Assembly (NCBI GenBank): GCA_964199315.1 | Contig: OZ116699.1 | Location: 18,290,001 to 18,354,000 of the forward strand | Direction: 5' to 3' | Source: Orbicella franksi | Taxonomy: Eukaryota | DNA: 64,000 nt | Shown here: positions 35,679 through 37,579 of the stretch, piece after piece | Numbering within the stretch: the stretch's first letter is position 1 | How the letters are laid out: each line of letters opens with the position of its first letter | Notes under the pieces: generated by a model | Database searches by the model: none | What the model saw: only the letters and a program-made list of their open reading frames with translations | What the model was told of the DNA's origin: nothing | Program-made: the position numbers and the translations under genes

Positions 35679-35945
35679 TTTAAATTCGCATTTTAAAGAT
35701 GCTGCTGACCACAAGCAAAGTAGGCTCGAGAAGTCTGATCTGAGAGAGGTTGGTAAAGAAACTGTGGAAAACTGAAACATTTTTACCATAATTGCTACTA
35801 ATCTCGCAATCTGATTGGCTAATTTGCTGTTGTCGATAAGAGTCCAGACAACGCTGCTCGCGTCAATGTGTCACACTCTTGTTCACGCTCTGAAAAACAT
35901 TGATATTGTGGTAAAAAAAACAAATCGAATGAGGTTTAGAGTTGT

Positions 35946-36746
35946 GATAAGTTAATAAAGATGGTGAATTTTTTAAGCTCGGTAATGAAATGTGAAGGTG
36001 AATTAATCAACATGACACGAACGTGGGACAAAGAAAAATTCTGAATCCCCAACAGGAATCGAACCCATGACCTCCCGAACACCGGGCGGGCGCTCTATCC
36101 ACTGAGCTACGAGAACTCATGGAGAGCAAGGTCATTTAACTGAGTTCATATATGATAGGTGTCCCGCATACTGCTAGGATCAACGCTATCGAATTCATCG
36201 TGAGTAGTGATAAGTTAATAAAGATGGTGAATTTTAAGCTCAGTAATGAAATGTGAAGGTGAATTAATCAACATGACATGAGCGTGGGACAAAGAAAAAT
36301 TCTGAGTCCCCGACAGGAATCAAACCCATGACCTCCCGAACACCGGGCGGGCGCTCTATTCACTGAGCTACGAGAACTCATGGAGAGCAAGGTCATTTAA
36401 CTGAGTTCATATATGATAGGTGTCCCGCATACTGCTAGGATCAATGCTATTGAATTCATCGTGAATTAATCAACATGACACCTTCACATTTCATTACCGA
36501 GCTTAAAATTCACCATCTTTATTAACTTATCACTACTCACGATGAATTTGATAGCGTTGATCCTAGCAGTATGCGGGACACCTATCATATATGAACTCAG
36601 TTAAATGACCTTGCTCTCCATGAGTTCTCGTAGCTCAGTGGATAGAGCGCCCGCCCGGTGTTCGGGAGGTCATGGGTTCGATTCCTGTCGGGGACTCAGA
36701 ATTTTTCTTTGTCCCACGCTCGTGTCATGTTGATTAATTCACCTTC
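35946..36746. mobile_element. Insertion of a ~263-bp tRNA-mimic unit: two tandem minus copies plus one inverted plus copy, bounded by a 15-bp TSD
   Basis: GAGGTTTAGAGTTGT at 35931-35945 and 36747-36761. Minus-orientation units start at 35944 and 36207, the inversion junction is at 36461-36480, and the plus copy spans 36479-36746. Each unit has A box TAGCTCAGTGG, B box GGTTCGATTCC (one variant) and a cloverleaf. Confidence 0.9.
36621..36706 (+). pseudogene. tRNA-like cassette (pseudo-Thr, GGT in anticodon position) within the repeat unit; two more copies on the minus strand (~36040-36125, ~36300-36385)
   Basis: GAGTTCTCG-TA-GCTC-AGTGGATA-GAGC-G-CCCG.......CGGG-AGGTC-ATGGG-TTCGATT-CCTGT-CGGGGACTC, followed by a T5 run. 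The 9-bp acceptor-like stem, mismatched anticodon stem and non-canonical loop indicate it is not a functional tRNA. Confidence 0.7.
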
Positions 36747-37579
36747 GAGGTTTAGAGTTGTCTGTATTCTTATCACCAACGAGATGCATCATCACAGTGG
36801 ATGGCAGAAATCTGACATTTTCTATTATAAGCTTCGCGTAGACACTGCTTATGCTTCCTTTTCCGATACAGGAGGGAACAAAACATGGATGGAAGTCCGT
36901 CTTACTGTGTGTCAGGTATTTCACAGAGAGATAAGCCTCTATTACAGGTCCTAGACCCCTAAAGAAAGCTACTAAAATGCGATTGGCTAAACCTTTAGAG
37001 GAGAGCAATTTGAGATTAAGAGCTTAAGGTGATTCCCTAGTAAAAGAACCCGCCATAGATTTCCGATGAAACTTGGTATGCTGTTGTTACAGGACAAGGA
37101 GATATTAAAAACGTAGTAAAAAGAGGGGGTCACCATGCTTGTTTTCACACCAGAATGCTGACAAATACCGCTATTTAGGTGACTTTTGGTAATCTCTGTG
37201 CGCAACAAATAAGCTTGATTATTTTTCAATGCAGTGTGTTGTATCATCCAGAGTTTGACTTTCTTTGATTGTTTATTCATCTACGTCCCAGAAAAAATGT
37301 CTTCAAATACCTTGCATTATTTTTTATCCTTTAAAGGAAACATAATTTGGACATGCACTGTTGGGCCTGTTATGTCTCCCTCCGTAGTATTTATTCCATT
37401 TGCCGGAAAAGTAGCCATAGAATTCTGCTATTTTTTATCTCAGTTATTGAGGATATTGTTCTCATTGAAATTATGAAATAAAAAGTGAGACCAAGGTTTA
37501 GTAGTATATTTATTTTTCTAATCAACAGTCAGGTGAAAGTTACCGTATGATCATAGGCACGCTTCAACAAGAGAAGGTA

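Follow-up and report, generated by a model that had tools for sequence, protein, structure and literature searches.

The 801-bp block at positions 35946-36746 of the window (the whole 64,000-nt stretch of Orbicella franksi DNA that was analysed) is probably a copy of an abundant non-autonomous retroelement, built on a 261-bp unit that carries a tRNA-like module and integrated by the form of target-primed reverse transcription (RT) used by Penelope-like elements (PLEs). The block is an insertion formed by about two antisense units and one sense unit, and its features, with phases counted along the unit, are as follows.

35931-35945: left target-site duplication, 15 bp, GAGGTTTAGAGTTGT, a perfect duplicate of the right copy
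35946-36464, minus strand: B arm, about two antisense units, with its outer end at phase ~54, the tailed RT start site B, and its inner end at phase 59
35946-35989, minus strand: one-sided tail, unit phases 11-54, present only at the B-arm end and absent at the other end, and likened to the tail described for PLEs (PMC8557442; PMC11167929)
36461-36481, minus strand: templated filler of 21 nt at the inversion joint, an exact copy of unit phases 243-3
36479-36746, plus strand: A arm, one sense unit plus 7 nt, with its outer end at phase 7, the untailed RT start site A
36727-36746, plus strand: start of a mini-ORF of 19 codons (ATG at 36727), which in tandem units spans both RT start sites
36747-36761: right target-site duplication, 15 bp, GAGGTTTAGAGTTGT

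Repeat analysis bore out the preliminary description of a tandem-plus-inverted insertion of this length with a templated filler and a perfect 15-bp duplication. The direct repeats at 35971-36203 and 36232-36464 are 96% identical and have a period of 261 bp; the ~263 bp originally given for the unit applies only where an A/T run has two additional bases. Two pairs of inverted repeats are present, one of 268 nt (35994-36261 and 36479-36746; 98% complementary) and one of 210 nt (36255-36464 and 36537-36746; 97% complementary), and the spacer between the inverted repeats is of 72-217 nt. The left border of the insertion is ambiguous by a few bases, because the left duplication ends in 7 nt (GAGTTGT) that are close to the element sequence (GAGTAGT). 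At the inversion joint, the 21-nt filler shares 4 nt (GTGA) with the left arm and 3 nt (CAC) with the right, microhomologies of the kind expected for template switching. The unit has a GC content of 44% and its RNA is predicted to fold with modest stability (z = -2.5) into a structure that is not rod-like, in which a predicted stem-loop, on weak evidence, may hold site A.

Each of the three units contains a tRNA-like module that scores between 42 and 48 bits in Rfam, where the cut-off for tRNA is 29 bits, and each module is followed by a run of five T residues (T5).

36043-36116, minus strand: tRNA-like module 1 (Rfam tRNA, 42 bits), with intact A and B boxes
36304-36377, minus strand: tRNA-like module 2 (Rfam tRNA, 42.4 bits), with a point change in both boxes
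36624-36697, plus strand: tRNA-like module 3 (Rfam tRNA, 47.7 bits), the best preserved of the three
36702-36706, plus strand: T5 run, in the loop of a GGGAC/GTCCC hairpin 5 nt past the tRNA-like module, which resembles a Pol III terminator

In the unit, the module occupies phases 146-219 and the T5, which is the sole run of at least four T residues on the sense strand, phases 224-228. The cloverleaf had been placed in the middle of the unit, directly before the T5 and unlike the arrangement in a normal SINE, and the Rfam matches agree with this placement. ARAGORN calls the modules Thr-GGT. The anticodon loop (CCGGTGT) has a C at position 33, i.e., it is without U33, and a non-standard pair is marked in the anticodon stem in the Rfam alignment; the module thus lacks both the U33 loop and the fully paired anticodon stem of a functional tRNA gene. 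In an Rfam scan of the insertion (E ≤ 1) tRNA alone was matched and no ribozyme family was found, and the hammerhead core word CUGANGA is absent from both strands. The module most likely has the putative role of a captured Pol III gene or promoter, or of a structured RNA handle, and the ends of the element are not set by it.

The insertion is an ordinary member of the 261-bp family. In a first look at the 497-Mb Orbicella franksi assembly, 1089 candidates were found genome-wide for the unit and 1441 for the tail region; the scored copies are 97-99% identical, and a large, young, non-autonomous and non-coding family is supported. The near-identity of the units had been taken to indicate a young insertion; the copy is a fairly recent one in a young family, and the ~1.5% divergence of the three units at 35946-36746 from the family consensus is average (the family mean is 1.2%). 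The proposal that an older fragment lies at ~59125 had to be dropped, as 59121-59168 is only a 49-nt, 78% match to the T-arm/hairpin region and is single-copy in the genome.

Copies at 30 loci, representing 26 independent insertions, were analysed with their arms oriented by the tRNA-sense strand. In all 26 insertions the sense 3' ends face outward, and they stop at two sites only: site A, at unit phase 7-16 (mostly 10-12), and site B, at phase 54-60. The ends at phases 10 and 54 are without a simple repeat, and the distance between the A and B ends, ~44 nt, is the length of the tail. Two arms are found in 19 of the 26 insertions, with arm lengths of 0.1-5.2 units, and in each of these 19 two-armed copies a single A end is paired with a single B end; the chance of this, were the ends chosen independently at 50:50, would be ~2e-6. 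The remaining insertions include five single-arm copies with either an A or a B end, together with L016, with an A end and a second arm that has decayed, and L020, the B arm of which is very short. The inner arm ends, by contrast with these fixed ends, are permuted, being scattered round the unit, and the two arms of one copy meet at unrelated phases. Target duplications of 12-18 bp (median 14) were found in 17 of the 21 copies measured, their sequence varying from copy to copy, and the other four have an exact duplication match of 7-9 bp; microhomology of 1-7 nt between target and element is seen at both junctions. Target-primed retro-insertion with a Penelope-type layout, as first proposed from a single copy, is thus upheld by the fixed ends, variable joints and target duplications of the family.

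The fixed ends are the sense 3' ends and the variable ends are the 5' ends; therefore, we infer that the RNA template was the tRNA-sense strand, copied from two fixed sites toward its 5' end. That the template is multimeric, which had also been suggested, follows from single arms that reach 5.2 units. In the mechanism that we propose, the target would be nicked on both strands, ~14 bp apart, and each free 3' end would prime cDNA on a multimeric tRNA-sense element RNA, one priming occurring at the internal site A (phase ~10) and the other at site B (phase ~54), which would leave the 44-nt tail at one end. The inward-growing cDNAs would stop at arbitrary points and would then be joined via template switching and microhomology, the joint in 35946-36746 including the 21-nt filler. 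The enzyme would presumably be a PLE reverse transcriptase with a GIY-YIG endonuclease. Fold-back self-priming was considered as the source of the inversion and is excluded, since the arms meet at different phases. Templates of multi-unit arms made by Pol III would need read-through of up to five T5 runs, and read-through or Pol II transcripts of genomic arrays are therefore the more likely templates.

The units also carry a record of their sources. A private marker, G97, is found in three of three units of the insertion at 35946-36746; in L015 the markers 66C and 209T are found in five of five units, and in L017 68C and 134C in three of three. As these markers are common to both arms, a single source lineage gave rise to both arms of a copy, and there are several such lineages. 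In L015 the units have the same order in both arms (a mirrored X-X-Y), with the variants inside and the consensus-like unit outside, and L020 has unlike units in this order within one arm. These patterns favour a heterogeneous linear multimer as template over rolling-circle copying of a monomer, although gene conversion could mimic them. Unit divergence is the same within and between insertions (median 1.9% for both), a comparison that is uninformative on circle versus multimer because of the star phylogeny.

PLEs are known to leave tandem and inverted, 5'-truncated copies with a tail of 30-40 bp at one end only (PMC8557442). In the first in vitro PLE system, described in 2024, both target strands were primed from two internal start sites; the purified protein cuts and extends both strands, RT is initiated at a pair of neighbouring internal sites on the RNA, which mark the limits of the tail, and initiation is reported to occur without homology to the target (PMC11167929). 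The family described here shares with PLEs the partial tandems with an adjacent inverted 5'-truncated copy, the tail at one end only, the short target duplications, the two fixed internal RT start sites and a mini-ORF start that straddles the ends. In the mini-ORF, sites A and B fall near codons 8 and 22, respectively. This parallels Pen2a_Av, in which the pseudo-LTR (pLTR) ends 12 codons into the ORF and the tail extends to codon 22 (PMC3846280), and by this analogy the 19-codon mini-ORF may be a relic of the start of a PLE ORF. The family differs from PLEs in that the whole element is a 261-bp non-coding unit with a tRNA-like gene and its own terminator, in the length of the tail (44 nt versus the published 30-40 bp), in the frequent junction microhomology, as opposed to homology-free initiation in vitro, and in the absence of a hammerhead, which most canonical PLEs and all retrozymes carry. 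Known pLTR-only or non-autonomous derivatives of PLEs include the Pen3a pLTR-framed host genes of Adineta vaga and MRC1/Chlamys of Chlamydomonas.

Retrozymes provide a second comparison. Metazoan non-LTR retrozymes, e.g., those of the coral Acropora millepora, are tandem units of 170-400 nt with a type I hammerhead (PMC7229834; bioRxiv 10.64898/2026.07.22.740005). The likeness lies in small, low-GC tandem units in a coral, in being non-autonomous, in duplications of more than 4 bp and in the proposed dependence on PLEs. In contrast to retrozymes, the family is without any Rfam ribozyme, 74 nt of its unit are a tRNA-like module, and no circular or unit-length RNA was seen for it in the data covered, which are polyA only.

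The preliminary description had proposed that the tRNA lookalike is an RNase P/Z processing signal that replaces the hammerhead and frees unit-length RNA, with replication via multimeric or circular RNA. We consider this unlikely. The unit does have the size and tandem layout of a retrozyme without having a ribozyme, and the module, at 42-48 bits, lies ~30 nt upstream of the region of the mini-ORF and start sites, at about the same place as the hammerhead of PLEs. Arm starts are also enriched in the 3' half of the module, at phases 186-204 (9 of 44 versus 3.2 expected; post hoc P = 0.004), where the folded module may stall the reverse transcriptase. However, none of the 44 arm starts lies within 5 nt of the 5' border of the tRNA and one lies near its 3' border, with ~1.9 expected at each, and uncut, complete modules are found inside arms of up to 5.2 units, which means no cutting of the templates at these points. 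A multimer-cutting role for the tRNA part is therefore unsupported. Moreover, RNase P and RNase Z acting together would cut the module out and not release whole units. The products of RNase P and RNase Z have 5'-phosphate and 3'-OH ends, which RtcB ligase is not known to accept. In retrozymes, the RNA is circularised by RtcB (PMC7229834). Rolling-circle monomer copying would also not be expected to give unlike units in the same arm, as in L015 and L020, barring later gene conversion.

RNA data bear on the same proposal. In the raw reads of a polyA RNA-seq run (X23), 327 reads were found on the unit, with equal mate orientations and a flat depth, and 37 of them cross the unit-to-unit joint, which is in favour of the proposal; transcription of genomic tandem copies explains the joint-crossing reads equally. 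No pile-ups of molecule starts or ends were seen on the unit in these polyA reads, a library type that cannot exclude small or circular RNAs, and this, together with the 55% of reads that run into unlike, unrelated flanks, with loose ends exactly at the A and B borders, speaks against processing into units. Passive co-transcription of the thousands of dispersed copies would give this pattern, and slight DNA contamination would look alike.

In a looser form of the proposal, selection would have kept the tRNA-like gene for a working role, as Pol III promoter, processing signal or structured handle for the reverse transcriptase, in which it would replace the hammerhead of PLEs and retrozymes; this we regard as possible, if doubtful.

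That the family is an ordinary tRNA-derived SINE moved by a LINE (RTE, CR1 or L2), with inversions that arose via twin priming, is decidedly unlikely. In common with tRNA-derived SINEs, the copies have a tRNA-like part with intact Pol III A and B boxes, a high copy number, target duplications and no coding capacity; LINE-type integration, too, typically gives 5' truncation and duplications of 12-18 bp, and a LINE reverse transcriptase is found nearby (RVT_1 in L013). However, the copies do not start at a tRNA head and end in a fixed tail, which the preliminary description had named as the marks of an ordinary SINE: the module (phases 146-219) is internal, i.e., permuted, and not 5', it is directly followed by the T5 terminator, and the ends lie at phases 10 and 54, without an A-rich or microsatellite tail of the LINE type. 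Furthermore, the copies are multimeric and two-armed, an inversion is found in nearly all of them, and the inverted arm has a fixed end in place of variable internal priming points, as the A/B rule (19 of 19) demonstrates. No LINE that shares the unit sequence was found within the 200 kb examined.

An origin at the DNA level, either as a fold-back DNA transposon with arms built of repeats or through capture, at a staggered break, of a fragment of satellite or extrachromosomal DNA, is highly improbable. The arms do resemble those of fold-back elements, being inverted and made of a varying number of tandem repeats, and the duplication length is fairly uniform. However, the termini differ in phase (10 versus 54) and are not mutual inverted repeats, the 5' truncation of the arms occurs at random points of the unit, templated fillers and microhomology are found at the joints, and DNA transposon superfamilies are not known to make target duplications as long as ~14 bp.

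If the insertions are the products of PLE-type integration, as we favour, they bear on a poorly understood process, the mobility of PLEs, and the family offers thousands of natural, young insertion scars with the two-site behaviour seen in vitro. The pairing of a single A start with a single B start in every two-armed copy sampled suggests some coordination between the two primings. The family further indicates that PLE-type mobilisation needs no hammerhead ribozyme in the parasite. In the literature that we searched, PLE-dependent non-autonomous elements are hammerhead-bearing or pLTR-framed, and no paper was found in which PLE-type mobilisation is combined with a complete tRNA-like Pol III gene. 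Were the tRNA-like gene a working part, Penelope-like retrotransposons would have their first parasite of the SINE type (Pol III, tRNA-based), and the tailed/untailed rule would report, in vivo, on a dimeric complex that primes both strands in a coordinated manner.

In the window, the insertion lies in the 2.5-kb spacer between DPCD, whose exons are matched by Pfam DPCD at 32987-35006 on the minus strand, and a tRNA isopentenyltransferase gene.

34914-35003, minus strand: first coding exon of DPCD, with the ATG at 35003
37792-39234, minus strand: intron-less (single-exon) tRNA isopentenyltransferase gene, 481 aa (Pfam IPPT, 232 bits)

As DPCD is on the minus strand with its ATG at 35003, the insertion is 943 bp (~0.94 kb) upstream of the ATG, and not the few hundred bp that had been stated. 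The three A/B-box sites described there are present; the palindrome is an inverted repeat, but it is not spacerless, its arms being 72-217 nt apart. The insertion thereby puts three tRNA-like Pol III box sets and an inverted repeat of 210-268 bp 0.9 kb upstream of a cilia gene. Similar 15-mers, at 35808-35822 and 36976-36990, flank the insertion and contain ATTGG (a CCAAT box on the opposite strand), and the insertion may have split a promoter region in the spacer. A 340-nt contig from a coral metatranscriptome (run X1) aligns outward from the exact first base of the right duplication (36747), and its 29 further letters are unlike the element; it could be an empty-site allele. Run X1 is labelled as RNA, but its contigs also cover the silent flank, and the run therefore contains DNA.

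We also searched for an autonomous partner. More than 1000 GIY-YIG candidates are found genome-wide, some in open frames of 528-1034 aa. At the 12 best-scoring GIY-YIG loci (L031-L042, e.g., L034:234-2811), none of which is a PLE, BLAST with a two-unit query gave chance matches only, and a search of the genome with the tail region alone gave nothing but copies of the family. These 12 loci belong to an abundant repeat in which a GIY-YIG ORF of ~153 aa lies between two inverted ORFs of 230-360 aa, for which Pfam gives low-specificity helical or coiled-coil matches only. No reverse transcriptase was found within 1.5 kb of these repeats and no Rfam match within them, and they are not canonical PLEs.

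Two further loci, L008:1476-3266 and L023:1476-3266 (G000 C5, at ~15.389 and 15.416 Mb), contain arrays of two and three units of the 261-bp repeat, for which a target duplication was not found. Site A forms the end of the arrays, and 13 nt further on is the ATG of a ~480-aa coiled-coil ORF with a hydrophobic C-terminus, while the other side of the arrays has an unannotated ORF of 418 aa; the whole arrangement is duplicated, 26 kb apart. A 512-aa in-frame ORF at these loci was considered as a pLTR-ORF junction or partner and rejected, as Pfam shows neither an RT nor an endonuclease in it and the real ATG lies 13 nt past the array. The ORF is not related to the coiled-coil ORFs that adjoin the GIY-YIG genes. 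Finally, L006:100-290 (minus strand) has an unrelated tRNA-Ser(TGA)-like head followed by a long non-tRNA body, and resembles a conventional tRNA-headed SINE.
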